Shown here: piece by piece, positions 27,947-64,000 of the stretch
Position numbering within the stretch: the stretch's first letter is position 1
Layout of the letters: each line of letters opens with the position of its first letter
NCBI GenBank assembly: GCA_002189035.1
Contig: NEEC01000018.1
Coordinates: forward strand, 930,001-994,000
Direction of reading: 5' to 3'
DNA: 64,000 bases
Source: Utricularia gibba
Taxonomy: Eukaryota > Plantae > Magnoliophyta
Position numbers and translations under genes: made by a program
The notes under the pieces: model-generated
Databases searched by the model: none
Told to the model about the DNA's origin: nothing
What the model saw: only the letters and a program-made list of their open reading frames with translations

Positions 27947-28270
27947 TGTTGAAAATGTTTATGTAGTTGTTTTGAGTAACGTAGCACCTTGTACTTCTCA
28001 TGAGAATTCAAATACCATCAACCGTTTACAACAGGTTTGAGAGATATTTAAAACAATACAAAGGGCCATAGTTGACTGTTGAGACATCTAGTAGTGGGCC
28101 TGAGTGGTTTACTTCGGTTTGGGCTTTCCTATAGCTAGTGTTGGACCTTGCTGTTTAATTGATCCAGTAACTTTCCTTGTCCACAGTTGTTCTATCATCG
28201 ACAACTGCTGATGTGCGGAGACGACAACAGAATCCTACCTGTTCGACAGCATAAGCAGCAGTCTTCAACA
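27947..28270 (-). repeat. 3' LTR of the copia element (324 bp)
   Basis: TGTTG...CAACA termini. Direct repeat of 32301..32616, preceded on the minus strand by the purine-rich tract AAGGGAGTG. Confidence 0.92.
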
Positions 28271-32288: not shown

Positions 32289-32300
32289 GCTCTAATACCA
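32289..32300 (-). other. Primer-binding site for initiator Met-tRNA
   Basis: Minus strand reads TGGTATTAGAGC directly after the 5' LTR; the canonical TGGTATCAGAGC with one C>T change. Confidence 0.88.
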
Positions 32301-32616
32301 TGAAAATGTTTATATAGTTGTTTGGAGTAACAGCTTGTACTTCTCATGAGAATTCAAATACCATCAACCGTTTACAACATGTTTGAGAGATATTTAAAGC
32401 AGTACAAAGGGCCATAGTCGACCATTGAGACATCTAGTAGTGGGCCTGAGTGGTTTACTTTGGTTTGGGCTTTTCCATAGCTGGTATTGGACCTTGCTGT
32501 TTAATTGGCCCAATAACTTTCCTTGTCCACAATTGTTCTATCATTGACAGGCGCTGATGTACGGAAACGACAATAGAATCCTTACTGTTCGACAGCATAA
32601 GCAGCAGTCTTCAACA
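32301..32616 (-). repeat. 5' LTR of the copia element (316 bp)
   Basis: About 92% identical to the other LTR (~26 substitutions and 3 small indels by manual alignment) and adjacent to the PBS. Confidence 0.92.
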
Positions 32617-36695: not shown

Positions 36696-39115
36696 TTATC
36701 TGCCTTTCAGAACTCTTTGAGGATCAAGCTGCCCACTGCAGTAACTAGACGGCACAACAGAAAGTTCCTGTCTTCCTCTCCATTCTTCACCAGGCTTCAG
36801 AATGATGGGTTTCTCAATAGCAGCGGACTCAATGCAGAGCATATGCCTATATTCAGTATCCCCAAAATCAGGCAGCGCTTTTGCCTTCTTATCCCAAGGA
36901 TTCCACACAACTGTGAATAAAAATGAAGAACAAAGTTAAAAACAACTCTAGAAATTGCTGTGTCCTATCCTAGTGTTTGTCCAGAAATGGATGAATATGT
37001 GCCTACACATGGTTTAGAAAAAGTTAGTCAAGATCTTTAAGAAAAGCCAGCTTGACAATTCTAGATCTAGAAAAGACGAGGCATCTGCAAAATCCCAGAT
37101 TTAAAAAACGCACTATGAAGGTTTGAAAATATTGTATTCATGATTTGGAACTACAACTTGTGTATGCCCAATCAAACTCACCTGCATCTGGAAGGCCGTC
37201 TTTACGAATGACAAAGGTTCGCTTTTTTTCATGATCCAGGATAGCAATCTTTGTAGGAGTGCTGAGGTATATTCTATCCACCTAATGGAAATGGAGAATC
37301 TCAAGCGTAATGGCTTACATTCGAACATTTAGAGGGTTACGAGCATCAATTTCATGAACTCACCTCATCCTCAAAGGTGATAGCATCTCCTTGTTCAGTA
37401 AATCGTTGTCTATTCTGTAGGTTATCTAAATAATCCAGCGTCTCCAGTCCTTCTACACGAACTTCACTGAATGATGTGTTCATAAAAAGATAGTAATGAA
37501 CCAAATATCCATCCAACACAAAAAATGTACAATTCAGAAAGGAATTATCACTAGCAATATCGAGCCAGATATTTTTTTTAAAGAAAATCATATGCAAGAC
37601 AAATATCATTAATACTGACAAAGTACCTGATGTCGGAAACAGAGAAATATGTGTGGTATGCAAAAGTAAAACTAAAAGGCTTTCCATCAGTACTTGTGTT
37701 TCTGACACGAGACGTCAACATAAGATCTCCTGATGGCCCTAGAGTTACTCGCAAACGGAACTCAAAACTGTAAGGGGGATATAGAGACAGAGAATTAAAA
37801 GAAGTTCATGCAACAAAAAATCATTTTTGAAACAAACGAGAATCTTCTAAGTTTTCACCTATGAGGCCACAATTTAAGGTCTGCTTCACTCGGCTTTAGA
37901 AGCAAGTCTACGAATGCCTTATTAGTAGAAGGTGTTGCAAAAGGTGGTGGGGAAGGATCGATTATCCATAACCTATTCCTAGCAAAACCGTGGCCTTCCA
38001 GTGGACCAAAGTTTGAGAACTAAAAATACAAAGCAGTTTAAATACCATGGCGGATGTTGAATGAAACACAGAAGGAGGTGATCTTACTTGAGGAAAGCAA
38101 AGAGGGATGCCCCCACGAATCGGCTTTGGTGGTTTAAAAATGGCCTGATGTATAAGGATTGTATGGTCAACATATTCAAATAAAAGAAAATAATTTTTGA
38201 AATGAATAACAGGTGATGAGATTTGAGATCTACAGCAAGAAATACATCATTTATTCGATCCCAAATATGTTAACGAATGTCTTGAAAACGAATACATATG
38301 CTAAGCATCCCAAGATATAATTCAAGTACTCTTCCTTATGCACGTAAAGAATGAAGACAGTCTCGAGGAAAAGATCACTTGTTTAATCCAAAGTATGCTG
38401 AAAAATTTATTAAAACCGAACATAGAGTAAGCATCTCATATTTTTATCCAACAACTCAGAATCGAAAATTGGAATTTTAGATACCAAGAAGAGATACCTT
38501 ATTACTGACAAAAAGTAATTCTTCTCTACTCTCATTCTTCCATGATGTTACATGAGCTCCATACAAGTAGATCTGTAAAATAAATGACGAATCCATATTT
38601 GATCTGGAGGTTTAGCAAAATAAATATAAGATAGACGGAATCAGATTCTTGCAAATCATTTTCACAATATCATCAAGGAGGACCCATAAAACTCTACTTG
38701 TAAAGTGAAATCCATAAGCATGATCTGCAGAATGTATCAGACCCCTGTCGTTTACACCAAAGCATATCAATTGCACAAAGTTCCAAATTACATCACAATC
38801 TCTTGCCAAATCATGCCGTCATGCATATAACTACGGCGTAAGCACCAGGAAGCTTTTCAGAACATAGCGTGAAAGAGTGGAATCAGGCGTGCGCCTCCCG
38901 AGTTTCAAAAAAAATTCAGCTAGAAATACAGATCAAGTGATTCGCCAGTGAAAAATCAGAAACCGAAAGGTCAATACCTCAACGGAATTGCCTCGAATGT
39001 CTCCTAGGATAATCTTCTCGAGGCCGTTAACGCCCTTCGTTATATGGTAGGGAGGAGCATCGGCTTTCGCATCCTGCTCTGCCGCCGACGTTGCCGGTAC
39101 CCCTGCCGAAGACAT
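36696..39115 (-). CDS. Putative glucose-6-phosphate 1-epimerase (aldose 1-epimerase / galactose mutarotase-like family); 8 exons
   Basis: Exon 1 (39115..38978) ends GNSVE. Later exons read IYLYGAHVTSWK, IRGGIPLCFPQF, HGFARNR, FTFAYHTYF, VDRIYL, DGLPDA and VVWNPW...MLCIE; all introns are GT-AG. Confidence 0.93.
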
Positions 39116-39274
39116 GTTGGATCACCGGAGATTTGTGCAAAAGCAAAATTATATTCGTATTCTGTTCTGTTCGTTCCCCCAATATCTGAATTCCGAACCG
39201 AATTTTACGTTTTCCCATCGAAAATGCTTTTTCCATTTCGAAAATATTATTGGAGTATAATATAAGTTTTTGAG

Positions 39275-39345
39275 TGGGCCGGGCCGAGATGGGCTGGTTG
39301 ACTATATATAGACAAGTTATATTGGGCCAGAATCAATTTAGCCCA
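39275..39345 (-). promoter_or_regulatory. Core promoter of the epimerase gene: Site II (TGGGCY) cluster around a TATA-like TATATATA
   Basis: TGGGCC at 39275 and 39323, TGGGCT at 39290, AGCCCA at 39340, TATATATA at ~39303. Three of the four Site II-type motifs and the TATA-like element are retained in the copy at 61380-61433. Confidence 0.55.
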
Positions 39346-39461
39346 AGAAATGCATGGCTATTGGATTCAACAAGGATGGTCAAAACAAGGCTGTTTCAGA
39401 GGCAGCAACTTCTAGACTTTTGGGGCACCTGAAGCTCTCCTGTTCCTCGGCCCTTCTCTAG

Positions 39462-42101
39462 TTACCTCACCAGAGGGATAAGCAAGTACTCGGCATAGAA
39501 CAGCTGCAACCGCACAAAGGGAAAGCGAAAAATTCCAGCACAAGTTGACAGAAGAATTCAGACCAGAGAGAGGATGGGGTGTAAACTTACCTTCCATATG
39601 AACATGTAAAAGGAAGTAATCGCAGCCTTGCTCTTCAAGTCGATGGATTTAGCCCGGTTCCATAGCAGTCCGCCCAGTAACAAATGGCCGAGGATCTATA
39701 GCAAACATGAAGGTGAGGGTGTGTGTTGATAATTTATCAGGAGGGAAGCTTGGAGATGTGTGTTGTTACCATTGTGCACTTGCTCCAGAGGCATGTGGAT
39801 GTTGCTCCTACAAGCAGAGCAACGGTGTAGGCTATTTCGAGAAGATAGATGCAAATCCAAAAGACCTGCAGTGTATCAAGTTCCCAGAATTTGGTCAGGA
39901 AGGCAATGCAAGATGGAAAGGTGAAAAGAATTTGGACAATGAGAAAACTAGCCTTCTCCTGGCCGAGCCGGACTGTGAATGATTGAATACCGTAAACTCT
40001 ATCACCAACAATATCGGGTATGTCCTGCATCCAAGAGTTTGCGGAAGTTGATTTCTTTAGAGTAATGCAATCCTGGTATGTATCCATGAAGGAGTTATTT
40101 ATACCTTGAACAGGGCTATGACAACTGAGAAAAAGCTCATGAAAGCTGTTGCGAAAATCAATGGCTTTGTGAAGATGGTTGGCCTTCCAAAGACATAAGT
40201 CTGGAAAAAAGAAAGGGGTGCAGTATTCATTAAATTTCTCGACAGATATTCCTTCCGGAGTTGGTGAATTATAAGGGAAAAGGATTAGGTTAAACCTGGA
40301 CATGCAAATAGAACGCTATCTGGACAATCACTGCTCGCACAGCCAAGATGCACGTAGCTGCAATGAAAGCAAACCTCTTCCATCTCAAAAATGGAAGCTG
40401 GAAAGGCAACAAATGTTAGAGTTGTAAGTCCAATGGGGCAGTCACTGGAAACTTTTGGGATACAGCTAAACCTCATAGTGCCATGAAAAATTTAATCCAT
40501 GGATGAGAGACAAGCAAGACACCCAAACTCAGGTGGCTTGTCCAATATCAAATCAACAGCAACCAGATAAACTTACATCAATGGAATAGGCAGTTCCGAG
40601 AACAAAGCTGACAGAGAGAGCCCAAAGCAGTGGTCTGGAACCAACGTGCAAGCCAAGCCAAAAACTCTGCAGGTGGTTTAAGAGAGGATAATGAAAATGC
40701 GTGTATAACCATCTAACATGAATTATTCCACTATATGAGATGCTCAAGGGGAGGGCTTCGAACAGAGGGGGCACCCTTATAAGAACACCATGTGCAAACA
40801 TATAAAACAAAAAGTGAGGGAGAAGGCAATGGAATCATATACAGACCAAGGCAGCAAAGAATGAGACAATCATCAATCCAGTTGTGAGCGAGAATTCCCC
40901 AGATGCCAATGGCAGATACGGTTTGTTGACCTGAGAAGTGGCCCCTCATGTCACTCCTTGAGTTATTTTGGTACAGGAAGACACAAGAGCAACAAAGATA
41001 GGCTTCCATCCATCATGTTCAATCCATAAAATTTTAATCAGGTTCATTTAGTAGGAAGAATGTACTCAGTAAATATCCAATTTAACCGTAATGGTAATTC
41101 TCATCGTTATAAACCATGCCACACTCCCACACCATTTCAATGTTCTTGACTAACTTCAGGGAGTTACATTCTTAAACTAACCTTGTCGATGTCAATGTCA
41201 GATATTTGATTTAATCCAACAATGTATATGTTCATAAATAGGGCAGCAACAACAGCCTGGAAATCGATTAAATTAAACCACTTGCATGGCCCAGCATAAA
41301 TCATATTAAACAAGATCTGAGACTAGATGTTGCAGTACCTGGGAAACCCCAAACAAAAATGCTGGAGAAAAATCTGATAGCTTCTCTACCGCAAGAAGAG
41401 AAACTGAAATTATGCTCAATACCTGCATACCAGGGTAGATAGATTAAGACCAACAGCATATACAAATGCATGTAAATATTTTCAAATTTAACAGTTCCTC
41501 TTAACAAGATTTCAAACGCAACTGTTCCTATAACGGTGTGGGGCCGCGAAAATCTGTAGAAAGCATCAAAAGCTCGTAGCATTGATCCCAAGGGTCGGTT
41601 AGAAGGTTCAGATTCAAGAGAGCCATGCGAAACTGAGTTTACTATAACGCCTGAACTCCGTTTTGGAATTGTCGCCAAATGTTTTATGCCAAAACTTTGG
41701 TTATGAATCTGCTTCAACGTCAGCCTCTCTATCCGTGACCTCAACGATTTGGTAGAAGAGAAATCACTACATCTCGAAGAATAAGCTGCCACAAATGAAC
41801 CCAAGATTATCAAGACCAGAACTTTCCAAAACCCACAATATTATAAACCCAACCACTTAGAATTTTCTGAAAACAATACAGAGAGAATTCACCAAAATGA
41901 TAAATTTCACTTCCAGCCCAACAGATTCAGCTACAACAGCAACGAAAAAAGGTTTGCAAAAACAAGATCTCACATTTTGTTCATGAAACCAAAAGAAACA
42001 GCAATTCTCATACCCGGGACGCGTAAAACTAACTCAGCAGTAGTCTTGGCAGAGAGTAGAGACGAAGTTCCAGGAGAGCACCCGGAAAGCATGAACACCA
42101 T
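39462..42101 (-). CDS. HPT1: Homogentisate phytyltransferase (tocopherol pathway); one GC-AG intron
   Basis: Motifs [65 protein letters not shown] and [20 protein letters not shown], with a Ser-rich transit-like exon 1-2. Confidence 0.95.
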
Positions 42102-43623
42102 TTTCTTCTCTGTCAGTACCTAACACCGGTTTCACGAAACGCGTAGAAGCAAATTAAGAGGCATGCAACGCGACTGATTCCCCTAGCAGTATCAGATCTC
42201 CCATTATATTAATAAAGGACGAGTGAATGCATTTATAGAAACTCTACCAGTAAAATATTCAAGCACCCACCCACGCATGAACAGTAGTTTCAGTTTTCAC
42301 CGCCCTCCTCCACCCCTCCCCACCCCCCCATGAATTCGAACCCTTCAAAGCAAACACACCCAGAGCACATTCCGTAATCCGATAAACTGCAGGAATTCAA
42401 GCAATGCAGGTTAAAAAAACCCTACCGCGCGATGCTCTGAGGGAGAATTGCAGTGGCAGCAAGATGCCCACCTTCTGTTCGATTCAATTCCATTTCTTTT
42501 TGTTTTGTTTCCATTTTCATGTTTATTTAAACTGCTATACGAGTCAAAATCAGTGCATGGGTTTCCCGGGATGGCGACAAAGCAGCATACTGGTTTAAAA
42601 CCGGGTCCAAATGCGGGTCACAACTTGGACACCCTATATGGCCACAAACCTCTGTAGCTTGATTCCTTTTCATGTTTCTATGGACACCAGCCGAGTGGGT
42701 CCCATAGGCACGGCTTCATTCACTCGCTACATTTAATAACTTTGGGATAGGTTTGGTCGGTGGTTATAATAATATTTTATTTTTAATAAATGCTTTTTAG
42801 GTAATTAGATTTAACCCAAACTATAGGGTAACATGATTCTATTTAAAAAATATGTATTCATGTTAATAGTACCATTTTTAAGTACATAAAAATATATTAT
42901 TATAGGTATTGAGATTGAGATTCCATCCCATTTGTAGTACGCATTCATTATTTTAATAATATTTTATTCATAATAATAATTTAAGTTTATAATTTTTCTT
43001 AAAAGTATAAAAAAAGAACGAGATCGGCTCATGGGCTTTCGATTTGTTAATTTTGAGGGTTTTAATTTGAAATAGTAACGCGAACGAATGGTGAATATTT
43101 CAACTTGAGAATCCTATGATCCTATATAAAATCGCAGTTAGCTAATGTTTTAAAATTTTAAAATATAAGGTAAGTACACTCTCTTGAAAACCAATGTCCC
43201 AAATAAAATCAAATAAGATGGCACCATAGGTAAATAAAGAACATGAAACCAAAATAACAATAACTTACATTAATAATCCTAAAAAAAATAACAGGGGATA
43301 TGGTCAGAACTTCATAATATATTAAATGTTCAGAAGGAAATTACTACTTTACCCCTATCTCACCACTGTCGTCTGTCGCCTAGTTTTGCGGGTCGGAATA
43401 CTGGAGCGTCGGGACTGGGCACCTGGCGTGTCAATTAGAAAACACCCAATGTCACAAAAACTATTCACAAAATTGCAACAGTGTGTATTAAATTTACGAA
43501 ATTGTACTTTCTTTAATGTGTATATAAATATTTTATCATAAAGATTATAATTTGTATTTTTATAATACTTAATAATAATTTTCAGTAAAATATTTTTAAT
43601 AAATAATTTTTTATATTTTTCAG

Positions 43624-43897
43624 AAATTATTGTGATCTTATAAAATATATATTATTAGTATTAAAATTATTTAAAAAATATTTTTTAATTATAAAAACGA
43701 GTTTTTTTTAGATTAGAAATTATTTTGATTTAATGAAATATATATTATTAGTATTAAAATTATGTTAAAAATATTATTTATTATAAAAACGAGTTTATTT
43801 TAGATCAAAAATTATTTTGAACTTATGAAATCTATATTATTAGTGTTAACATTATTTATAAAGTATTATTTATTATTAAAAACGAGTTGATTTTAGG
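43624..43897. repeat. Three diverged ~92-bp tandem units flanked by imperfect inverted repeats (43445-43510 / 44005-44087)
   Basis: The unit core AAATTATT..GA....TAT.AAATATATATTATTAGT.TTAA.ATTAT...AAAAACGAGTT....TTAG recurs three times. The flanks share AATTTCGTAAA, AATACACAC and TTTTGTGACA in inverted orientation. Confidence 0.65.
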
Positions 43898-44639
43898 TGA
43901 TGATTTTTGAATAAAATTTTTTTTACTAAAAATCATTGTTAAATATTATAAAAATACAAATTATAATATTTGTGATACAATATTTACATACATATTAATA
44001 AAGGGTAATTTCGTAAACTTATACACAATAATCACACATAATACACACAGTGGTTAATTTTTTAAACATGTTTTGTGACAATGGATACTTTTAAAAATTA
44101 CCCCCATCTGGCTAGTCATTCTTGGATGCTGAAATTACTCAATACTACCCGGATTATTCTCTTACAATTACGCTTCTGCCCTTATGATACTTTTCTTGAC
44201 AGCTTCAGTTAGCACGACAAAGTGAGTTGGCATTTGGCAATGCACCTAAATTTGGTAAATGCATGTTTCAAAGTAGATAGATTAGCAAAATACAGTAAAT
44301 TTTTATTTTATTAGTGTTTTTCATAGGTTACAATGACAAAATTTGAGAAATGCATGTGTCACATTACATTTATTTGCAAAATACTAAAAGTTTTTCTTTA
44401 TTTTAAAAATTATATGTAATTTAAGTTTTCATTTACGAACTATCGTACTTTTTTATTTTTTAAATAAAAAAAAACTTATGGGGGGTATATCTTTACTTCA
44501 GGTAGGTGAACGATGAATAAAATAATCTTTACTTGAAAACAAAATAATCTTAAATATAATGTTTTTAAAAACTATATTAAATAATGCAATTCATTATTAA
44601 TAATGATATTAATAAAACTATACTAGTAAACTAATTAAA

Positions 44640-46045
44640 AAATTTTACAAAAATGTAATATAATAAATTATATAAGTTATTTAAGAAATAATAATTTAAT
44701 AATTTATTTTTATATGATTATAAAATATTTATATTTATAAAATATTTTTATATAAAAGTAACTATTTTTTACTCAAAATTATAATAAAAAATAGTTTTCT
44801 TATATTTTAAAATGATTTTTTAAATAATTAAAATCAATTATCATATTGAAATTGATATCAATTTTTATTTTATATTAATTACTAGAATTTTTCAATTTTT
44901 TGTGATTTTTACTTATTAATTATTTAACATACATGTTTAATATCATTTTACATTAACTGGAAGTATTCAAAATTTTTTTGTAATTCAGTTTATCATTTAT
45001 TCATTTGCAAATTATGAATTGAAAAATGATAACAATAATTAAGAATTTTTGAAAGTATTTTACAAAATTTTGAAAATGTTATATATGATTTTAAAATTGG
45101 AATACCATTAATTTACAAATAAATTTATAAATATAATGTATTTTACAAATAAAAAAAATTAGAGTAATTTGCAAAGTAAAGCAAAAGTTCCTACAAAATG
45201 CAAATAAACAACACTGACACATGCAAAATACTAATTATCTCTTGGACTAAATTAGGATTTTGCATGTGACATTGTTTTTTATTGGCATTTTACTAGAACT
45301 TTTGTTTTAATTTATGAATTACTTGATTTTGTTATATTTATTTATAAAATATATTATATTTATGAATTTGTATGCAAAATAATGGTACTTTAATTTTAAA
45401 TTTTTACAAAAATGTAGCATAATAAACGATATAAGTTATTTATGAAATAAAAAATTAGTAATTAATTTTTATATTATTATAATTTATTTATGATTATAAA
45501 ATATGTTACATAAAAGTAACTCTTTTTTTAATTTAAATTGTAACAAAAATATTTTTTGTATTTTGAAATAATTAAAATCAATCATCAATTTAAAATTAAT
45601 AACATTTTTTTAGTTTATGTTAATTATTACAATTATCCAATTTTTTTTGTAATTTTTGCTTATAATTATTTTTCATATATGTTCAATATCACTTTAAATT
45701 AAATGTAAATATTTAATTTTTTTGTAATTCAATTTTTTAATTTATAAGCACCTATAATTATATTTATTAAAATATTATTTATTCATTTGGAAATTATGAA
45801 AAATGATAATAACAATTATGGATATCTAAAAGTATTATACAAAATTTTGAATATCTTATATATAAGTAATATTTAAATATGTTATATGTGATTTTAAAAT
45901 TGAAATAACATTATTTTACAAAAAAATTCATAACTCTAATATATTTTACAAACAAAAATAACAAAGTCAAGTAATTTACAAATAAAAACAAAAGTTCCGA
46001 TAAAATGCCAATAAAAAATACTAACACATATAAAACACTAATTTA
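44640..46045. repeat. Two diverged ~600-bp AT-rich direct repeats (44640-45236, 45400-46045) with a foldback hairpin at 45163-45323
   Basis: Collinear shared blocks by eye (e.g. TTTTACAAAAATGTA, AATAATTAAAATCAAT, CAAAAGTTCC..AAAATGC.AATAAA). 45250-45323 is an imperfect reverse complement of 45163-45236. Confidence 0.6.
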
Positions 46046-47629
46046 CTTTTATCTCTTGGCAATCTAACCTTCTCCAACATAATTATTAGCAAAATAGTCC
46101 CATTTGGTAATTTTTTATGTAATAGTCTTGTTATACTTAAAATAATGATTTTATTCATTATGTATTTAATTTAATATATAAACAGAGTATTTTATAAATA
46201 TAACCTATAAATACAATTATTTTTAATTGATAAAAATCATATTTTAAAGTATAACTTTTTATAAAAAATATAAATTCAACAAACAAAATTATATTACATT
46301 TTTAAATGCAATGATAACGGTGCCTTATCATATATAAAACTATGACTGCATGGATTATGTAAAATTGCATTAATGATTCTTAATTTATATATATCGAAGT
46401 ATGGATACATGCATGGATTATACTAATTATTAATCTAATTTTATGTATTAATAATTTTTATATATACATAAACTTTTTATCCATAACGATGTATCATTAT
46501 TAATTTTTATATATTTGTATTTTTTGAATATAGTTAATTATTTTTATTATATAAAATATAGTACTTTAGAGTGTTTAATAAAAATAGAGTTATTTAACAA
46601 ACAATTTTACAAAAGAAGTCTATTTTACGAATGATTGTGAAAAGGGATTATTTGACTAATAAAATTGTAAAATCAGTCTATTTTGCTAAAAAAACCCGCA
46701 CGACAAAAGCCTTCGTCGATCTTACTCGCATTCTTGTGCCGAATTCCTGTAAAATGCCAATGAATTACACGCTAATCCGCCGCTTCAGTTCTCCGTCGAG
46801 AAGAAATCGGTACGGCTTCCTTCTCCGCCGCTGGTTATGGCTCCGCCGATCCAATTGGGTAATGAGAACCCTTCTTCCATCCCTTTCTTCAGGGACGATT
46901 TTCCCATATTCCAACGCGGTGTATTTTGACGATATGCCTCATTTCCAGACTCTACGATTCTTTCTTCAATCCAAGTACCAGTGGGCATTGGATGATTAAT
47001 ACGAGAGTAATGGGAAAGTAATCAAGATTTGTACTTGCGTGATCGCGCATTGTCAAGATTTGTACTTGTGTTGCACAAATGGGGAGTAATCAAAAAAGGC
47101 AAAAAAGCCCAGGAGAAGAGCTCCTTTTCCTCCCCCACTCCATTTGACTTTAACCTCAAACCCAAGCCCACCGTTTCTTTTACTTTTAAAATATTTTTCT
47201 ATAATAGAAAATTAATTTATAAAATTAACATAAGATTCTAAATGGATTCCTACCGGTTTACATAGTTTTCTTCATGTGGTTGATATATTAGAATAAATAA
47301 TTCTATATCAGGATTTGAAATTAAAATAATTACTAATATTAAAAAAATACAAATTATCATTAATTTCTTAGATTAATTTTTTTAATATTATTTATATTTA
47401 TTATTTACTTGAATTTCATGTATATTCGTATATCTATCAAATACTTAATTTCAAATGTTTTTTTTTATCAGTAATTTAAAGTTTTGTAATGATATGTTGT
47501 GTTGTATTTCATATTTTGAAACGCATGAAAAGAATTGCCACCCAACAAGCGAGGTGATTCTATGTTCTGGGAGCATACTGTTTCGAAAGAGGTGTGTCAT
47601 AGATTTGAGTAAAAGATCAAAATATACTT

Positions 47630-47731
47630 GGTTTCTGCAAAAAGGCCGGAATGCAGCCACTGGTGCCTTCCGGGAGTTACCGATGTGTGGAACGAGTTAA
47701 ATATGCAACGTTGGTGCTCAGACAAAGTTAA
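47630..47731 (+). pseudogene. Orphan 3' fragment of a TBL5-like gene
   Basis: Encodes VSAKRPECSHWCLPGVTDVWNEL-(1-nt frameshift)-YATLVLRQS*. 47630-47677 matches 63953-64000 at 44 of 48 nt, and there is no homology upstream of 47630. Confidence 0.88.
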
Positions 47732-48319
47732 GTGAAACCAGCAACATTCTTGTATTTCTGTGGTCAGCTGCCTTTTTCTTGGGAGATTGGTCCCAAATCC
47801 ACGGTTCCTTTTTCATGCCCACATCTCTGTGCCGAGCTAAGTTAAACTCCATGAACACCTGCAACCCCCTTTGGATCCAAATCATTAATTAAACCAAGAG
47901 ATAAGACACATACAAGAACCTGTGCTTGGGATACAAGAGACTTGCCGACAAGAGCTGTTCGGAAAAGTGGGTATGATGTGAACGTTGATTGGGTACGGCT
48001 TCTGTTCCCGGAGCATCAGCCTTAGCATTATCGGCCGACTAATTAATGTTAGTGGAGTGCCGTATGAAAGCCGCTGAGAAACTGGGCGGGGCCCCATTCT
48101 CAGTCAATCTCGCCGCGGAAGCCCAAATCCTCTCGCTGTCAGTCTGCAACGGCTTCCTCTCTGTCTCTCTCTGGCTCTTTGTTTCACATGGAAATGCTGT
48201 CTCAATCCTTAAAAGGGTTTGTATTATTCCTTATTTCTCACGGTGTTTCCTTTCACTGCTTGTGGGAGAATGCTGAGGTTTTGCTTCTGACGATAATCTG
48301 AGTCCTGGTGAAGAGGAAA

Positions 48320-52239: not shown

Positions 52240-52417
52240 GTGTTTTGGAAAATTTTTAAAATCTATTTCTATTTTTTAAAAATAAAAATATGTTTGTTTT
52301 AAAATACTTTTAATTATAAAAGTAATTCTATAATTACTTTTATTTTTATTTTTTATTTTTACTTTTCAAAAATAATTTTGAAAATTAAAAACAGATTTCA
52401 AAAATTTTCCACAACAC
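52240..52417. mobile_element. 178-bp MITE-like element with TA flanks
   Basis: ~25-bp near-perfect TIRs (GTGTTTTGGAAAATTTTTAAAATCT vs reverse complement of AGATTTCAAAAATTTTCCACAACAC), TA on both sides, and a related copy at 10947. Confidence 0.65.
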
Positions 52418-54555
52418 TAATTAAGTATACTTCTAGTCCCTTTTTTCGTAATAAAATAATATAAAATCATAAAAATCAAATAACTAAAATAAAACATATC
52501 ATATAAACAGAATGTGAAACATAACTTAGAAGATGTTATTACACGCGGACGGAGACACGTAGCATTAGCTAGAGAATCTTAAAATGATTTGATATTGAAT
52601 TCGGGTGGGTTCCGATCCATCGGATTCTTCGTCTATTTGAGAGTTATTTTTCCCAAGTTGAGATTAAAATAATTCTGGAGGTGATATGATTCTTGGTTAG
52701 GGAATCATTTTCTTGTAATCCATAAGATTGCTTTCAATCTAAAAAAGTCATAACGCATGTGACGCATTCAACCATGACCCATTCTCGATTCTATAAACAC
52801 TAACATAAATTAATTGTTTAAGATTTAATTAAGCAATCATTTTGTATTTAATTACAATTCCTAGACGCTCATTACAAGCCAGTCGTATTGAGTCGTGAAA
52901 ATGGATCGTACAATGAAAAGTTAGGTGTTCGAAAGATAACCTTATATTAAACTTTATTAGATTTTTTAATTAAATTTTATTATTTGAATCACAAAATTAA
53001 GAATGCGCGTATTAAAATGGTTGAGATTATTTTTGATAAATACAAGTATATTAAAAAGATTAAAAATTATATTTTTAAGTTATTTATATGTAATTTTTCT
53101 CATTTAAGAAAATGTTAGGTAGACAGAACGCTACACTATTCTGAATTTTTTTTAATAAAATAAATAATTAAAAAAAATCTACTCAAGTTCATGCATTTTT
53201 TTATAATGTTCACTTGGGAATATCATCTTCAAAAAGGGTTTTTTAATAAGAATTATTGTAATCAACGAATTAAAATTTCATTTAAAAAAAACAAATGATT
53301 ATGATTTCACAGTACCGTTCACAAAAGTTACATTGACCAATATTCGAAATTGGACTTCCGATTTAAACCAAAATCAAACTTTTAGTCAATTATTTTTAGG
53401 GAAAATGACCCAAGAAATTTTAAGAATAATTAATTTATTTAAAAAAACTAAAATCCAAAATTTTGACAAGATTTTGCAAGTTTATTATACGTTCCTATTT
53501 TGATGGGATTAGCATAACACTTCGAACAATAACTAGCTTAAATAACCAAGAATCCGGACTAATCTTGTATGTTCGGTTCACATAATTTCGTAAATTAATG
53601 TTTTTTAATTTCTTGAATAGATAAATCATTTTGTAGTAAAATAAAAATTTCAAATTTTACGATTAATTTCAAAAATATAAATTTTTTAAATTTTTATTTT
53701 AATTATTAAGTAAAATATTAATAAAAAATTATAGTATTTACTTTTATTTAATATAAAAATATATTTCTACCATAATATGAAAGTATATAATAATTTAATT
53801 AATTAAATTTTAAGTATATAATTTAATTTAATAAATTTTATAATATAATTATATACTATACAGTATAATATTTTTATAATCTTAAATTAATTCTATTCTA
53901 CATCATCTAAATATAGATTAATAATATAGAACACGGCCTTAATCCCACAATAAAATGATATAATGGCAATAATCGAAGGAATTTGCAAATGGTTTCCCAA
54001 TCAATATTTCTAATTTTTAGATAGTTTTTGGAGAAATATTGCACTCATTTTTACTTTTCTAAAAGTAGACACAAAATTATTCTATTCTTAAGGTTAGTGT
54101 TAAGATGAAATCTATAAAAGTAAAAATAGTAATAAGAAAAATTATATTTTAATCTATATTTAGTGTAAATTAAACATATTTTTTGATAGAAATAAAGTAA
54201 AAATAAGTTGTATTTGGTAGAAAAATAATTTTTATTTTTGGTTTAAATATTTTCCGGAAGAGTGATTTTCTGGAAATGAGAAGTTTTAAGAGTGTTATTG
54301 TCACAAAAAAATGCAAATAGTTATTAAATCAAAGCAACTGTTGTCATTATAATAATTAACACCATATAATTATAGTATAGTAACCACTAATTAATGCATA
54401 ATTAAAAATGTAAATAGATACATAATCCTCATTAGGCCCCTAAATATGCACACTAAAGTTGTGATTAATTGAGTCAGCGGGACAAATTGGTTCACTCATT
54501 ATAAAGGCGTTGGGACATCATCTTCTCGTGGGTTTCTTCTAACCATCACCAATTC

Positions 54556-55367
54556 ATGGAGGAAGACGACGAAGCACCTCTTGGTCTGGGGCTCCGCCTC
54601 GGGATCGGGGATTTCACGGCTGCCGGAAAGCCGAGGAGCGGCAAGAAACGAGTGTTCCTTGTCGATCTCCCGTTCCCGGTTCACAAAAGCAGCAGCGACG
54701 GGACGACGAGCGCCGACGATTCGAGTTTGAAGGAGGAAGTGGATGAAGGAGGAGGAGGTTGCAGCAGAAGCTATTCGAAGGATTTTGGAAGGAAGAAATT
54801 GAGGCTCACTAGAGATCAGACCTCATTGCTTGAAGATAGCTTCAGACATCAGACTACCCTCAACATGGTAATTGCATTAAGGGTGTGCTAGGTTTGTTTC
54901 TTGTCGCGTCTGGGGATTCTGATTAGGGTTTTTTGATCCACTCCAATAGGCTGAGAAACAGGCTCTAGCAGAGAAACTCAAGCTGAAGCCCAGACAAGTA
55001 GAGGTTTGGTTTCAGAACAGGAGGGCAAGGTTAGGGTGAAAGATCTCATTTTTTTATCCGTATAATGTTGATAAACTAAGCACAGAATGAGAGGAAGAAC
55101 TCAGTTCTGTTCCATGTCAGATGATTTCAATTCCATATCCTGAAATGCAGGACTAAGCTGAAGCAAACAGAAGTGGACTGCGAGCTCCTGAGGAAAAACT
55201 GCGAGAGACTATTGGAAGAGAATCGTCGACTAAAAGAGGAGTTATCGAAACTGGGAAAAGTCCTCCCGGAGTTCCTCCGGAGCTCTACGGTGCCGGAGAA
55301 GACAGGGAAACATCAACATAGGGGTGGCGGGGTGAAGCCGGCGGTGGTCCCGGAGCACCAACCCTAA
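54556..55367 (+). CDS. HD-Zip class II homeobox-leucine zipper protein; 3 exons (54556..54867, 54950..55030, 55151..55367)
   Basis: EAR-like LGLGLRLG, homeodomain [10 protein letters not shown]...LEDSF...[14 protein letters not shown] and zipper start [13 protein letters not shown]. Confidence 0.92.
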
Positions 55368-57227
55368 TGATCACCGTAGACGGCTTCAATATTACTAAAC
55401 TTACATGTATCAAATGAAGTGAATTCATAGGCCGCCCTGCCCTTAGCATGAGGATTTTTTCTGGGCTATGCCTCTGTGCTTCCACTCATTTGCACAATAC
55501 CATACAGCAAACCCTAACATTCCCAGTTCCCAATTCTGGCCATTGGAATTAATGATCTCATAACCCTGAAAAAAATGATGGCCAATCATAAGACATCAGA
55601 AAAAGAAAAGAAAAAAGAAGGAAAGAAATGTCTTAAGTATCATAATTGTAAGAGGATTGAAGATGGGAGACTTTGGTAATAATTATTTATGAAGTCGTGG
55701 GGCAATTCTTTTCCACACTAATCAATTATCAGCCATCCTGTTAGTCCAATAATTTGATTATTTTGGGGCAAAATCAGCAGAATCTACTGCCCTAGCCTGC
55801 CTGCATCATCATCCATTAAACCCTAATCCCCCACTAAGTTACCCCACATTGCAGTAATTTCAAAAAATACTGAGCAAACCAAGAGACGACGTCGTTTCCT
55901 ATTTCTGGGGCTGTGTATGCTAGGAGGAGAAAAAGACGGGTGGAGTTTGCCACCGTCACTACAATCAGTATAAGAAATTTAATCATAATTTTCAAAATTG
56001 CATCATAGTTTCCTCAATCTATTTTTTTGTAAATAGTTTACCTCTCAATTTATCAAAATTATATATTTAACTCTTCATATTATCAAAATTCATCAATTTT
56101 GATCTTAATATCATTATAACGGTGTATCCTTATGGATTTCGATTCAACTAACTTTAGATGCAAATGCAAAAAATCATAGCATGAATTGTTTTTGGATTTA
56201 AAATTAAATTCAATTTACAGTATTGTGAATCAGTTCACTTTTAAAAAATTTTAAAAACTATTTAAATCTTGGTTAACAGTTTTAACATTTTGATATGTTT
56301 TTTTGTAATTTTGAAACTTAAATATTAAATTCTTTATAATAATCAAAACTTGAAGTATTTTTATTGTAATTTTCTCAAGAAAAAGACTTATTTCAATAGG
56401 CATATTGTTGATGCTTCTTCATCTCTTCCCTGTCCCAACTGCCATTGGAATGAGTTGACTGACTGTGGCAGCCGACAAACAGAGAGGAGGGGTTACTATT
56501 ATTTGCAAACTTCACCAGTTAAACAACACCAGAGCAAGTAGAAGTGGAACAAAACTCTTAAATGCAGTTGCCAAAGCCTAGAGGCGTAGCCCCATGTTCT
56601 TCTCCTTGCCTCTTTCTCATCTAATCTACAGTACTGTACAACTGCAACCTCATCTCCATGTATTTATTGTACTACGCAGTAGAAATTATGCTACATGACT
56701 GGAGACAGATCCCATTCTCCCTTGGAGGCACGCTCTGCCTTGCCAACTGCTAGCCGACAAAAACCAGTTCAATGGAAAGGAAGAGTTAGAAGTGGATTTC
56801 TGGAAAACATAACTTGTTAGGGTGTTGTGATGAACTGTAAGAGATCTGATGTTTCTGGTAATGAGATGATCGATTACTTATGGAACTGTATCAGCCCTTC
56901 AACAAGGGTAAACAATGTTTAATGTAGTTACCAAGTGTCGTTCAAGTTAAGTCAATCTTGTGTTCCTTCTTCCAAACACATCTCGTGGAAAACCCGAATT
57001 ATGTTAGGCAAGACAGATTGATTGCATAATAACAAGTCACTGGTAAGAATAGTTCCCAGGTCCAAAGACTGGAATGCATGCAATAGCTGCGCTGTGTGGA
57101 GTCCATCACGAAAGGTGAACAGTTTTCTCATATTGCTGGAGGGAAAAATGATTGGAAATGTTGCTATGGTCGTTGCTAGGGACATTACTATCAGTTGGAT
57201 AGTAAACAGAAGCACAAGGGTGGGAGA

Positions 57228-58470
57228 TCAAAGCTCGTCCTCGTCGATCCCAATAAGCTTTGCAAGTTCTCCACTTTCGTATGCTTCCAGAGTGTCTGCA
57301 ACCAAAGAAATCCAGTTGACACATTGCGTAGAAAAATGGAATGTGGATGACCAATGAGGGTACCATCAGAGCCTCCAATGTGTTTCCCATGAACGAACAC
57401 CTGTGGGACGGTTCGTCGTCCCACGATCTCAGAGACAGCTTGCTGGATTTCAGGGCCATCATCTGAAAATCAATGGTGAAAGCATTAGCTGAAAGGTAAA
57501 CAAGTGAACTGTATATCCGGATGAACATTCATAGAATCATGAACTAGGTGCTACCCCAACTGGGAGAAAGAAAAAACTAATGAAAACATCACTGGATGCC
57601 TGTCTATCAAAGCTCCTTTGATATTTTATTGTGTGTAATTCAGGATGATTTAGAGTAATGAAAATATGAACCTTGTTCATCGAGTTCAATGATGTAAGGC
57701 TTCTGCATCAATTCCTTGAAGACTGCCTTTGCCCTTTTACAGTATCTAATTAGGGAAAACACGCCACAGTCAAGGAAGCAGAAATTCAATGGCCATATGG
57801 GGGTGGGGGAGTGGGTTGAATCACTTCATCAACAAGTTAACAGGGGGATCTAAAAAGCAAGAAAGTGCAATAAAAGAAAGTGTTCATCAACATCTCAAAA
57901 AAACACTCAATCCCATGTCCTTCAGAAAGCAAGCTTTCTTGATAAAAATCTACTTCTTTCGTATACCACGAAAAATCTGCATTATATCAATGATCTGAAA
58001 CCTCATACAGCCCCAGACATTCAACTTAATCCAGAGAGCTGGATCTAATATAAAATGGGACAGAACAGGCGGAATCGGATCCCGCAAATCTCCCAGTGCC
58101 ACAGACATAAGAAATAACCGTAAAAGCACACGATATACCAGATTCAACAAATTTGACCCAAAAAACATCGCCTAAGATTTACTTCATCGTGCATAGAAAA
58201 CCAGAAATCCTCAACACATGACCATACAGAATGCACCCATTAGCAAATTCAAGGGAAACCCAAAACGAATCAAAGAACAAGCAGTCCATACGGGCAATAA
58301 GATTTGGAGAAGATGACAATGGGGTGAGATTCAATAGTCTTCTTCACGAGGGAAATCCGCTGTTCCAGAGAGATTTCGGTGGCCACAGAAAACGATGTCA
58401 GGCATGCAAGCACCAGTAACGCCATCAATGAAATGAAACGCAGCGATGACAGCACGGTGGTCGTCGCCAT
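57228..58470 (-). CDS. GRXC4: Glutaredoxin, CPYC class, with N-terminal signal/anchor; 4 exons
   Basis: SKSYCP|YC active site split by intron 1, [25 protein letters not shown] and an acidic C-terminus DEDEL*. Confidence 0.92.
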
Positions 58471-60039
58471 CGCGGATCCCCAAGGTTTAGATGCGAATAG
58501 AAAGAGTCCTTCAAGGAGGCGAGCAACGCTTCTACTCAAGCGACATTCTTTAATTGAAGTCAACAAAATTTAGCAGAAAAAAGGAGTAAACGAAAGAAAA
58601 TATACAAAGAAAGCTACCCCTGTTTTTCATTTTAGAAAAGTGGCCATTCAGTTGAAAAAAAAATGATCAATTTATAATCTATTTTTAAAAGTAATTATCC
58701 TAACTTTATATCTTACATAATTAATTTTTTATATATATGATAATTATTTTTCTCACAGAGTAAAAAAAAAAAAGATGATTAATTTTTAAATTCATGCTCA
58801 ATAATTTATATCTAAATTTTTTGTCTTTAGTACTCAAGTGAGGAATTGATATTGACTACCAGATCAAGCTCAAGGTTATCTCATGAAAGGAGGAAGTTTC
58901 ATATCTAAGTCTGAGCTTGCAACAATGATGATGTGGATAGTTGGTGCAAAAATTGAATCAAAAAAGTGTTCAAGACATTTATTTTGAATTTGTGATTAAT
59001 TAGTCTCTTTTTTTATGGTATCTTTAGGTTTACATGAATGAATAATCAAATTTTAAAAAGTTAAAATATCATGTCAGATTCTTTATTAACATGCTGATTC
59101 AAAATAGTGCACACTTAAAATATTATGATTATACATCATTATATGAATAATTATTACTTTTATTTGTTATTACCATAAGACAATGAGTCACATATTGGCT
59201 CCCTTGAACACTCCTTTTATCAAAAGGGTGTATGTAAAATACCACTCATTTTAAAAATATTAATTAAATACCACTTATTTTAATTTTAAATAAAATAACA
59301 AACTATTATTGTGTGTGAAATTTTTGTTATACATTTAAAATAAAATAGTTTAAAATAACTATTATTTTAAATTAAATTATTTTCAAACATATTTATTTAA
59401 TAATAACAATTTTATGTATTGTATGATCATTTCTTGTGGTATTTTTACATGACTTATGTATCATAATTGACATTCACGTATTCTTCAGTGTCATCTAATA
59501 TTCCTAAAAATTACTAAAGATTATGTATCATCTGTTTAAAAATATGTGTATATAATATTATTTAATTTATTAAAAATATAAAAATAAATATTTTTCATCA
59601 AAGCATTAAAAAATATGTTTACCATTGTAATTTTGAACATATAAACATTAAATTAAAGCATTATTTAAAGTAAATATGCCTATAATTATATTTTGAAAAA
59701 AAATTATCCATTTATTTTTAATATATTAAATATGTGCTTATTTGTTATTATTTCTATCATCAAGACAGAAATACTGAGCAAATAAATAAATCAAAAAGAG
59801 GTATTCATCAAAATTTGTAAGAGGAAATATCCCCCAGCCGTCGCACAAAGAGTAGAAAAACTGATAACAACCTTGGGATGTTCGAGCGAGAGGCACACCT
59901 AATACAGTATAAAGAAGTTCGGTTTTTCGAATCAAATATGAAATCTGAAACTTTTTTGAATTTCAGCCTATCATGTACTCCTACTATTCCTAGGAAGTCA
60001 ATTGCATGAATACATCAGTGTACCAGTGGAGTGATCTGT

Positions 60040-61221
60040 TCAACCATTCTTAGTAACATATGAGATGAAGAGGTGAAGGTTTTCCAGCCCTAAAGTGAAG
60101 ATTGCACCGAACAAAAAGATCAGTACAAAGGCCAACAATATCTTCCCCACATACAGAAGAGTGAGAGGAGGCTTCTTTGGCGCTGCAGAGTCATGGACAT
60201 CACCATCCTGAAGCCACAAGTAATTGCGATCAACGCCAAGTAAGATCCATGTACCAAGATGATGATTCCATTAACCGTCACACTAATGAAAAGCTCAAAA
60301 TACATGCAGTAAAATATTGTCGGGAATAACAGGGCTTCCTATATTTGATCTGATCCTCACCAAGCTGCTTTCATGATAATGACATTAACATTTCATTATA
60401 CTAATACCAGTAATACTAACTTTTTAATTATAAAAAAATACAGTTCTACTCACAACTAATTCCAAAGGGACTGAATTCCTAAACCCAGGTCACCGAAATG
60501 TAACATTGGAATAACAAAAAAGGCCTATACCTGAGTGGCTTTCCTCCTCCTTCTGCCATGGTGTTCTTGTTTATCATCCATGCCTACCAAGGCAAAAGGA
60601 AAAGCACGAATCAGTCAATATTCAAAGAAGGGTAAGCCAAAAAATCATATCTTCACCATATGATTCAGTGGCAGCCGTTCGCAACTTCCATCCGGAACCA
60701 TAGTCAACTAGCAGAGATCTGTGGCCAAAGCTAACGGGTTCTTCTTCTCCCCTGAAAGCCTCAATGTGCGTTGCTAATAAAACATCCCCCGCTTTAGCTT
60801 CACTCAGCAATTTCTTGTTGATCAAGTCAACAGCAAAACCCGCTTCAGTTCCAGCTGAAAAGCGCCTAGTTTTCCCCGAACTCGTGCACAGTACCTCAAT
60901 AAACTAAATATTGATGCAGTAAATACAGTTAGAATAAAGTCAATCATCGAAGACTCGATTTTATTATTGAGCAACAGCTTTCCAGAACATAGCGTGAAAG
61001 AGTGGAACATATCAAAAAAATTCAGCTAGAAATCGAGATCAAGTGATTCGCCGGTGATAAATTGGAATTCGAAAGGTCAATACCTCAACGGAGTTGCCTC
61101 GAATGTCTCCAAGGATGATCTTCTCGAGGCCATTCACGCCCTTCGTTATTTGGTAGGGAGGAGCATCAGGTTCCGCATCCTCCGCTGCCGCTGACTTCGC
61201 CGGGATATCAGTCGAGGACAT
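60040..61221 (-). CDS. Predicted chimeric 201-aa gene: epimerase-derived exon 1 (61221..61084) plus three exons (60903..60657, 60583..60531, 60207..60040) of an unrelated uncharacterised plant protein with a C-terminal transmembrane helix
   Basis: All three introns are GT-AG with matching phases (0, 1, 0), and the ORF is uninterrupted to TGA. Exon 1 is 117/138 nt identical to epimerase exon 1. Exon 2 carries EVLCTSSGKTRRFSAGTEAGFAV...HIEAFRGEEEPVSFG...GWKL; exon 4 carries LLYVGKILLAFVLIFLFGAIFTLGLENL. Confidence 0.78.
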
Positions 61222-61450
61222 GTTATATCACCTGAAATTTGTCCAAAAGCAAAACCGTATTCGCAGTCTCCTCTTCCTTTTTTCCCCCAATATCTGAATT
61301 CCGTACCGAATTTTATGTTTTCTTATCGGGACTGCTTTTTCCATTTCAGAAATATTATTGGAGTGCAACCGTTTTTTAGTGGGCTGGCTAAGTATATATA
61401 GAGGATATATTGGGCCAGGATCAACGGAGCCCAAAATATGCGTAGCTATT
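60970..61450. repeat. Duplicated block homologous to 38841..39365 (epimerase promoter, 5' UTR, exon 1 and 5' part of intron 1)
   Basis: Collinear similarity from AGCTTT.CAGAACATAGCGTGAAAGAGTGGAA to ATTGGGCCAG.ATCAA...AGCCCAA.A.ATGC.T.GCTATTG; similarity stops on both sides. Confidence 0.95.
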
Positions 61451-61819
61451 GTATTTTTAAAAAAGAAAAAAATATTTGTTAAATTTTAGTTTTGGATAAA
61501 ATAATCTTTTTGTTAATTAATACAATAACATAATTTAAATACATTTTAAAATTTACAGAATGTTTGATTTCAATTAATTATTTTTTAAGGTTTGGATTTG
61601 GTTTTATTTATCTGGTTTTTTAATATTGAAAGCTCTATAAAAATTAAAAATATAATATTTTAATAGGATACATATCCGACAGTGTCGGACCGACACTCTG
61701 ATAAATCGGGCTCTTGAAAAAACAGACACGAGCTCAAGGCCCAATTAAAGCTCAGCCTATCATTAAGTAAACAGTGACTGATAACGGGTGAGTGATTAGA
61801 ATACTAATTGGTATTAGAA

Positions 61820-64000
61820 ATGAGGTTAAGTGCGTTTGTGAAGAAGGGGAAAAGGCAAGCGCCAAGACGAGAGAATGCCTCCTCCAGTTCGTCTCTGCGA
61901 ATGCGGACCTCAGATTCCGCCCCTCACCCCATTTCCAAGCGGGGGAATCGCTCCATCTTCTACGCTTTCTCTTCCTTGCTTGTTTTCCTATTTTGCGCAT
62001 TCCTCCTCAGCAAAAACGTTCTCCACCCACCAAACCTCGATTCCTACATCGATTTCATTTCTAGGAGGGCGCCTAATGATGCTTTGGAGAAATCTGGTCA
62101 GTCACAAAACCCCGCGTCTGTGGATCTTGATGAGGTAGGAGAGAAGGGAGTGGCCTCATCGTTGAAGACTGAAAACAGTGAAGAAGCAGCAGTGCCCGTG
62201 TCATCAAGTTCTGACCTTGATGTTCAGTATGATCAGAAATCAGAGGCTAGCCTGAAAACCAGCGACCCCAAATCGTCGTTTGAGGAATTTGATCTTCCCG
62301 ATTCATCAACATCGGTTATTGACGAGAAAACTGAGGGAGTACAAGGCGTACTTTACATCTATGGGGCATCTGTTGAGAAGGGAGTTCCATCAGGCGCTAA
62401 TGCGGCTGCTATTGACAATGTATTTCTCGAAAAGCTGAGGAATTGTGACTTTTATAGAGGTAAATGGATCGAGGATGACAACCGTCCAATTTATGCACCG
62501 GGCAAGTGCCCGTATGTGGATGAAGCTTTTGATTGTCAGAGCAATGGGAGGCCTGATTCCGGCTACTTGAAATGGAGATGGAAGCCCGACGAATGTGATC
62601 TTCCCAGGTTGTTCATGTATTACTTTTTGCTACTGTTCACTTATTCTTGGGTCCGGGTAATGGTGGTCCATAGCAATCCTCAATTATTATGCTTGTTCGG
62701 ACCATAATCTACTTTTTTGAGCCATTTATTGATGAGAGAGGATACATTCGTAGTATGTGAATTTTACAGCCTTAGAAAAAGATTCTTTGAGGAAGAAAGG
62801 ATTGCACTTTCCTGTAAGTATACATGAGAAAAAGTTAAAATTTAGCTCATTGTGTGATTTTGTGTTTCCTGCCAACTCTTTACGCCTGTGGTCCTTTTCA
62901 CCGTGGTTGACTGTAACGCTGATGTAGGTGTGATAATTTCGTTTCGTTTTTTCAATGTATGGTTGCTATATCAGGTTCAATGCAACAGATTTTTTGGTAA
63001 GACTTAGCGGAAGGAGGCTTATGCTGGTGGGAGACTCAATGAACCGCAATCAGTTTGAGTCTCTCCTCTGTCTCCTGCGCGAAGGGCTGCCTGATAAGAG
63101 TAGAATGGTTGAAATCCATGGCTATAAAATCACAAAGGGACGAGGGTACTATGTTTTCAAATTCGAGGTAACTGCAATCTTGTGATCAAAATTTACTTAC
63201 TCTGAAAGCTAATGTAACACACTAGTTGGTGAATTCTGTGAAGCAGGATTTCAACTGTACTGTGGAGTTTATCCGATCACATTTTCTTGTGCGTGAAGGG
63301 ATTCGTGTGAATGCCCAAGGAAACTCAAACCCCACTTTGTCTATTGACAAGATCGATAAAAGTGCTAAACGTTGGTTGAGAGCTGATATTCTTGTTTTCA
63401 ACACGGGACATTGGTGGACTCATGGGAAGACCTCCAGAGGGTATGCTCCAACATTTCTCATATCCACGTTCCGCATCTAACCCCAGTGTGATGGTGCAGC
63501 AAAAACTACTATAAAGAAGGGAGCTACCTTTATCCCCAGTTTGATGCTGTTGAAGCATATAGAAGAGCCATTCGGACATGGGCTAAATGGATCAAGGCCA
63601 ACATTAGCACAGACAAACTTGTCTTGTATCGGGGCTACTCATCTGCACATTTCAGGTATCATTTCCTCTTGTTACGCTGCATTCATGCATCACAAATGTA
63701 GAAGATTTTAGTGTCTTCCTCACGCATAAACAGAGGCGGGGACTGGGATTCTGGTGGAACGTGCAATGGTGAAGACAAGCCTGTCGTTCAAGGGGCAATC
63801 CTCAAGAGCTACCCTGAGAAGATGACAATTCTGGAGGAAGTCCTCAAGGAAACTGGCGCCCCAGTTGTATTACTGAACATCACAACCTTAACCAACTATC
63901 GGAAAGACGGACATCCGTCGGTGTACGGCAAGAACGTAACCGGGCAGAAGAAGGTTTCTGCAAGAAGGCAGGATTGCAGCCATTGGTGCCTTCCGGGAGT
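61820..64000 (+). CDS. TBL5: TRICHOME BIREFRINGENCE-LIKE polysaccharide O-acetyltransferase (TBL5-like); 5 exons, 3' end outside the window
   Basis: N-terminal TM segment, CDFYRGKW...Y..GKCPYVDEAFDCQSNGRPDSGYLKWRWKP, GDS motif (LVGDSMNRNQFES), FNTGHWW, RKDGHPS and DCSHWCLPG at the window end. Confidence 0.93.

Follow-up and report, generated by a model that had tools for sequence, protein, structure and literature searches.

Could one old local duplication explain both a fusion gene and a TBL5 relic in Utricularia gibba?

Introduction

Why should the promoter and first exon of an aldose 1-epimerase gene stand in front of an unrelated gene about 22 kb away, and why should the last ~100 nt of a trichome birefringence-like 5 (TBL5) gene be stranded between two other genes of the same neighbourhood? 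Both oddities lie in one stretch of plant nuclear DNA from Utricularia gibba (assembly GCA_002189035.1, contig NEEC01000018.1, positions 930,001 to 994,000 of the forward strand), hereafter the window, which is 64,000 nt long and within which all positions are given. The unrelated gene, here called gene X, belongs to an uncharacterised, plant-only family of proteins of ~175 amino acids (aa) with a C-terminal membrane anchor and no Pfam domain. An earlier note on this DNA had traced both oddities to a ~22-kb tandem segmental duplication with reciprocal gene loss, in which the homogentisate prenyltransferase gene (HPT) was kept in the first copy and TBL5 in the second. The analysis reported here leads us to incline, with modest confidence, towards one old, local, DNA-level duplication followed by complementary deletions as the most economical reading of the sequences shared between the two places.

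Results

The window was compared with itself by a repeat finder, BLASTN and tblastx, and the stretches that intervene between the shared pieces were submitted to a sensitive search. This self-comparison, which the earlier note had called for, yielded two sequence pairs, and no more, connecting the left part with the right, both of them direct repeats. In pair 1, positions 38851-39367 match 60976-61455 (E 1.6e-118 in self-BLASTN, with the repeat finder and pairwise alignment concurring). The identity is 83% over the aligned bases, with 83 of 478 sites different, and pairwise alignment gives 37-43% in the flanks, the ends being sharp on both sides. In pair 2, which covers the C-terminus of TBL5, 47630-47677 match 63953-64000 at 44 of 48 positions (E 3.9e-12), and the match is cut by the end of the window. 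The two pairs are colinear and co-oriented, a relation that holds for only ~0.6 kb, and the tblastx comparison of the window with itself disclosed no hidden protein-level paralogy. A further match of 15 nt, at 63184-63198 beside the break at 47630, was set aside as chance (E = 4, no extension).

Which of the two epimerase 5' blocks is the source and which is the copy? The left block (38851-39367, minus strand) consists of part of intron 1 (38851-38977), the coding sequence of exon 1 (38978-39115) and the 5' untranslated region (UTR) with the promoter (39116-39367). It belongs to the aldose 1-epimerase gene that Pfam identifies at 36699-39115 on the minus strand; the native exons 2-8 are intact and in order to the left of 38978, down to 36699, and the sequence runs on unbroken across 38851. 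Since exon 1 is native to the epimerase and its exons 2-8 adjoin at the left, the right-hand block is the derived one. This block (60976-61455, minus strand) comprises 108 nt of intron 1 (60976-61083), a 46-codon copy of exon 1 that ends in a phase-0 GT donor (61084-61221) and ~235 nt of 5' UTR and promoter (61222-61455).

The divergence between the two blocks bears on the state of the copied exon. Kimura two-parameter distances rise from 0.14 for the intron part through 0.17 for the exon to 0.25 for the promoter part, and the copied exon 1 differs from its source by a synonymous divergence (dS) of 0.44 and a nonsynonymous divergence (dN) of 0.10. Over codons 25-46 of the exon (61084-61221 compared with 38978-39115), all five differences are synonymous (dS about 0.39), a pattern by which the borrowed N-terminus of the fusion gene looks constrained at the protein level.

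Where the derived block meets gene X, a novel junction lies between 60975 and 60976, as placed by pairwise alignment, by the sequence and by the start of the orthologue alignment. Intron 1 of X is on its left and intron 1 of the epimerase on its right, so that the two together form a hybrid intron of 180 nt (61083-60904); the acceptor of X exon 2 is 72 nt from the junction. Gene X occupies 60040-60903 on the minus strand and lacks its native exon 1. Its exon 2 starts at 60903, some 50 nt upstream of its position at first glance, and is followed by a small, poorly conserved middle exon (~60531-60583) and by the exon for the tail anchor (60207-60040). Its product is ~70% identical to the orthologues of Paulownia, Orobanche and Rehmannia. 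The orthologues all begin to align at their own residue ~19, exactly at 60903 and behind the AG acceptor (60904/60903), which indicates that the native exon 1 of X, with ~18 poorly conserved codons, is missing here. The copied epimerase exon 1 takes its place and is predicted to splice in frame.

There is one novel joint in the window at which the right end of the proposed unit meets its left end, namely 60975/60976. With exons of X to the left and intron 1, exon 1 and promoter of the epimerase to the right, it has the architecture expected of a tandem duplication that broke within introns of two genes on the same strand. Both sequence facts on which the earlier note had built, the junction of X with the epimerase and a TBL5 stump on the left against a TBL5 gene lacking HPT on the right, were borne out. 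Its coordinates were approximately right and needed shifting by up to ~10 nt (from 38841 to 38851 and from 60970 to 60975/6). As to the family of X, a relative in Tetracentron sinense is a 455-aa protein with three tandem copies of the X core domain, which from this example behaves as a repeatable module.

To the right of the fusion lies an apparently intact TBL5 gene on the plus strand (61901-64000), with exon 1 at ~61901-62610 and further exons at 62973-63167, 63244-63441, 63501-~63657 and from ~63735 to beyond 64000. All exons are present up to the end of the window, past which only the last ~20 codons fall. Its nearest proteins are trichome birefringence-like 5 proteins of Lamiales, with top matches in Genlisea, Penstemon and Rehmannia, the conserved exons being 85-89% identical and the variable first exon 46%. 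A search with exon 1 found its best match in Genlisea, at 46%, and no protein of the same species among the matches. The starts of the fusion gene, on the minus strand, and of TBL5, on the plus strand, are separated by about 680 nt in a head-to-head arrangement (61222-61900), and the two genes probably share a bidirectional promoter, half of it derived from the epimerase. An exact scan of metagenome contigs with the last 34 bases of the window returned no match.

Is the TBL5 fragment on the left still a gene? The relic (47630-47731, plus strand) holds the last ~34 codons, or ~100 nt, of a TBL5 coding sequence. It matches positions 260-281 of the 284 in the Pfam PC-Esterase profile (E 4e-9), and only there does it align with TBL5 C-termini. 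It is of TBL5 type: its first residues are those of the intact TBL5 of the window and of Genlisea, and its tail is TBL5-like in a shifted frame. A -1 frameshift near 47700 separates the DxxH motif from the conserved tail, and the native stop (47729-47731) stands in the shifted frame. The relic begins abruptly, midway through the sequence that forms the final exon of the intact gene; therefore, its border is a genomic break and not a splice boundary. Among the four differences from the intact gene, three are replacement changes at positions where TBL5 orthologues do not vary; one of these is the Asp of the DxxH motif, which we take to be catalytic in this family. Since all three leave the TBL5 consensus, the changes fall on the relic, which, judged by its sequence, is dead.

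HPT, of the HPT/VTE2 type, is found at 39737-41813 on the minus strand, identified by the Pfam UbiA domain and the translation of its N-terminal exon, and its one occurrence falls in the interval from the left epimerase block to the TBL5 relic. Among the genes of the window, the left side thus has the sole intact HPT and the right side the sole intact TBL5, as the earlier note had said. No other TBL remnant was found in 39368-47629. The proposal of reciprocal gene loss agrees with the alternation of intact copies and with the TBL5 stump at 47630-47731; it is let down by the right copy, which holds no HPT stump.

Is the adjacency of X and TBL5 an old arrangement or a new one? Gene order in relatives was read by proxy from the locus tags within protein names; XP accession numbers in Salvia hispanica and Coffea, which are hundreds to thousands apart, were left aside as an unreliable guide to position. 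In Rehmannia glutinosa, X (DH2020_006364) and TBL5 (DH2020_006376) are 12 tags apart on the same 95.5-Mb contig; in Salvia splendens, X (SASPL_108995) and TBL5 (SASPL_108984) are 11 tags apart, again on the same contig; and in Phlomoides rotata, X (ACS0TY_025076) and TBL5 (ACS0TY_025052) are 24 tags apart. The two genes are therefore linked, yet 11-24 gene models apart, across three species in two families of Lamiales, which argues that their adjacency in the window is derived. The ancestral order that the earlier note had implied, with TBL5 between HPT and the transporter gene, would have placed them 4 genes apart; the spacing in these relatives is wider. A derived adjacency suits a duplication that placed TBL5 beside X and, equally, a deletion of everything between them. 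A search of the literature on the locus tags within the Rehmannia, Salvia and Phlomoides X-TBL5 intervals found nothing.

A comparison of a few genes with Arabidopsis bears on the left half of the window. There, TBL5 is At5g20590 and GRXC4 is At5g20500, and SCY1 is At2g18710 and HPT/VTE2 is At2g18950. The window carries a SCY1-type plastid SecY gene at 15300-17350, about 22 kb from HPT, and a secretory-type (GRXC3/4-type) glutaredoxin gene near both TBL5 sequences. Because HPT lies near SecY as it does in Arabidopsis, it was probably already in place, inside any block running from the epimerase to TBL5; this order points to HPT being in its old neighbourhood and not a later insertion. Furthermore, the comparison suggests that the window fuses two ancient synteny blocks, one chromosome 2-like (SecY to HPT) and one chromosome 5-like (GRXC4, TBL5), at 41.8-57.1 kb. 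The TBL5 relic, at 47.6 kb, falls inside this interval.

The remaining genes of this part of the window are single-copy in it. A TPT-family transporter gene extends to ~50576 on the plus strand (Pfam TPT), an HD-Zip II gene lies at 54556-55367 on the plus strand (Pfam HALZ zipper), and a secretory class I glutaredoxin gene lies at ~57190-58470 on the minus strand (Pfam Glutaredoxin). BLASTN and tblastx self-comparison found no paralogous sequence for these three (48046-58566) elsewhere in the window, and a protein search with the exon 1 open reading frame (ORF) of the glutaredoxin gave no match. Spliced genes were compared exon by exon rather than as joined coding sequences. Pfam agrees with the identities that the earlier note had assigned to the epimerase, HPT, transporter, HD-Zip and glutaredoxin genes, and scans of the window with Rfam and for tRNA genes came back empty.

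Repeats surround these genes. An AT-rich block of ~4 kb (43500-47600, ~18% GC) takes up the greater part of the interval from HPT to the TBL5 relic and contains no gene, transposable element protein or other protein remnant. It is made up of tandem units of ~760-800 nt (44632-45236 against 45391-46043, 72% identical), tandem units of ~92 nt (43582-43858) and inverted repeats. Short, dispersed AT-rich repeats of 69-77% identity, probably elements resembling miniature inverted-repeat transposable elements (MITEs), sit downstream of the transporter gene (50726-51215), downstream of the HD-Zip gene (55986-56373) and near the window start (839-972), and a further pair links 10931-11188 with 52225-52431. 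A degenerate Ty1/copia-type retrotransposon lies at 27950-32616 on the minus strand, with gag-, integrase- and reverse transcriptase-like ORFs interrupted by stops. Its long terminal repeats (LTRs) of ~320 nt (27950-28270 and 32301-32616) are 90% identical, by which the duplication would be older than the copia insertion: the age of the fusion gene, roughly dS 0.4, exceeds the 10% divergence of the LTRs.

Discussion

What sequence of events could have produced this arrangement? Under the duplication that we favour, a block would have been copied from epimerase intron 1 (38851) rightwards, taking in the promoter of the epimerase, HPT and no less than the complete TBL5 gene, and the copy would have landed, with its orientation unchanged, some 22 kb downstream in intron 1 of gene X. 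In its simplest form, this would be a tandem duplication of 38851-60975, whose single joint at 60975/60976 would fuse the epimerase promoter and exon 1 to exons 2-4 of X. The new copy would then have lost HPT, so that the epimerase-derived promoter came to abut the promoter of TBL5, and the old copy would have lost the promoter and body of TBL5, leaving the last ~100 nt, which would have decayed since. Such complementary deletions could have occurred had HPT and TBL5 originally been arranged head to head, far enough apart to accommodate the two promoters. A single duplication accounts for the reciprocity of the pairs, which involve the same two places, and for their shared order and orientation, and it is from this pattern that we infer one event, its direction and the two deletions. 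The head-to-tail tandem form, with a 22-kb unit of 38851-60975, can be put forward only tentatively; a shorter copy inserted into X intron 1 would give the same picture within the window, but with two joints against the one of the tandem form. Of the parental genes at the outer ends, the epimerase is intact at the left; an intact X with its native exon 1 would fall outside the window.

Several observations weigh against this reading. Of the 22 kb proposed, only about 0.6 kb is demonstrably duplicated. The sensitive search of the two intervening stretches, 39368-47629 and 61456-63952, found nothing in common between them; at about 0.2 substitutions per site, other non-coding DNA should still align, and as none does, two exactly complementary deletions must be assumed. 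No HPT-like sequence was found to the right of 60976 within the window by BLASTN, tblastx or the sensitive search, and no HPT relic in 61456-61900, which tells against the tandem duplication of the earlier note; the pairs, the junction architecture and the lack of a transposon signature agree with it. Of the presumed second copy, the first ~3 kb alone lie within the window, and all evidence on the size of the unit lies beyond 64000. Whichever model is adopted, the spacing of 11-24 gene models in relatives means that this lineage must have lost genes from between X and TBL5. Furthermore, pair 2 is less diverged than pair 1 (8%, or 4 of 48 sites, against 17%), a difference with a one-sided binomial p of about 0.06 that is insufficient to separate their ages. 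The two divergences are compatible with one age, and the neutral clock of the relic may have started later than that of pair 1.

Could the two pieces instead have been patches laid down separately during repair? On this account, TBL5 lay ancestrally to the right of X; a large deletion removed exon 1 of X and roughly ten genes between X and TBL5, a 480-nt stretch copied from the nearby epimerase 5' region closed the break, and the junction of the HPT block with the transporter/glutaredoxin block was sealed independently with a short copy of the TBL5 3' end. Such a pair of templated repair patches (filler DNA) fits the structure of the window as well as the tandem form does, as does a smaller insertional duplication. 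Both pieces are short and sharply bounded amid unrelated sequence, both lie where a rearrangement is expected, at the X-TBL5 adjacency and in the interval of 41.8-57.1 kb between the chromosome 2-like and chromosome 5-like blocks, and of the two the TBL5 piece seems to be slightly the younger. On the other hand, two separate events would need, by chance, to have swapped pieces between one pair of sites with order and orientation preserved, the 480-nt patch would have to bring a promoter, an exon and a splice donor in frame, and all genes intervening between X and TBL5 would have to be lost cleanly. Filler patches are usually much shorter than 480 nt. We consider the patches unlikely, though they are the leading rival of the single duplication.

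Transposons and the assembly itself offer further routes to the same picture. The earlier note had raised the capture of gene fragments by transposable elements as the alternative, and a Pack-MULE or Helitron could in principle have moved the epimerase 5' and TBL5 3' fragments independently; the relic does stand at the edge of the 4-kb AT-rich block, and MITE-like repeats are scattered in the window. No transposon signature was found at either piece, however: no terminal inverted repeats or target-site duplications frame them, only AT-rich inverted and direct repeats at chance level; the border sequences at 60976 and 47630 have no Helitron-type ends (5'-TC and 3'-CTRR); and the intervening and adjoining ORFs have no Pfam match and no transposase or helicase remnants. 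Moreover, the right block holds a complete TBL5 gene, apparently working and with a predicted promoter, instead of a fragment. We therefore regard transposon capture as unlikely, to the extent of giving it very little credence. A false join or collapsed repeat in the assembly is harder still to credit as the maker of the junction, since the paired pieces are 8-17% different, with indels, and so are not confusable by an assembler, and since the junction lies inside a coherent, in-frame gene model.

How does the locus compare with known systems? Chimeric genes at the joints of tandem duplications with breakpoints in two genes have been described genome-wide in Drosophila and in plants. Like them, the fusion described here has its joint in the introns of two same-strand genes, an upstream promoter and exon 1 fused in frame, and an intact parental epimerase alongside; unlike them, it has no intact X parent in view, and the event dates far back (dS about 0.4), with much of its trace worn away. 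The retention of HPT on the left only and of TBL5 on the right only, with a decayed TBL5 stump, resembles the reciprocal (divergent) loss of duplicates, although here the duplicate is a local one and not a set of homeologues from a whole-genome event, the comparison extends to two genes only, and an HPT stump is lacking. Templated filler DNA at repaired double-strand breaks in plants is likewise short, sharply bounded and copied from nearby sequence in cis, at what seem to be rearrangement junctions. The epimerase piece differs from it in being 480 nt long with a complete functional module, and the patches would be reciprocal and colinear, which filler does not predict. The borders are sharp; any microhomology would be obscured by about 0.2 substitutions per site and by the lack of the pre-event sequence. 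Pack-MULE or Helitron capture also places gene fragments away from their parent gene and creates chimeric ORFs; in this case, no termini, target-site duplications or further copies were found, and one of the blocks is a whole, apparently working gene.

What would the locus mean for the genes concerned? Fusion genes at duplication joints and the alternate loss of duplicates are already well known, so that the value of the case is illustrative and not conceptual. We offer, as a possibility held with less than even confidence, that an epimerase promoter and a 46-codon N-terminus placed on a tail-anchored protein made a new, selectively maintained gene, and that a ~22-kb tandem duplication was resolved gene by gene, in the course of which the only working TBL5 was moved beside the fusion under a shared bidirectional promoter. 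If one duplication does lie behind both oddities, the locus would provide a compact worked example of a fusion gene built at a duplication joint, and also one of the alternate loss of redundant copies and of a gene relocated to a new neighbour and a new promoter.

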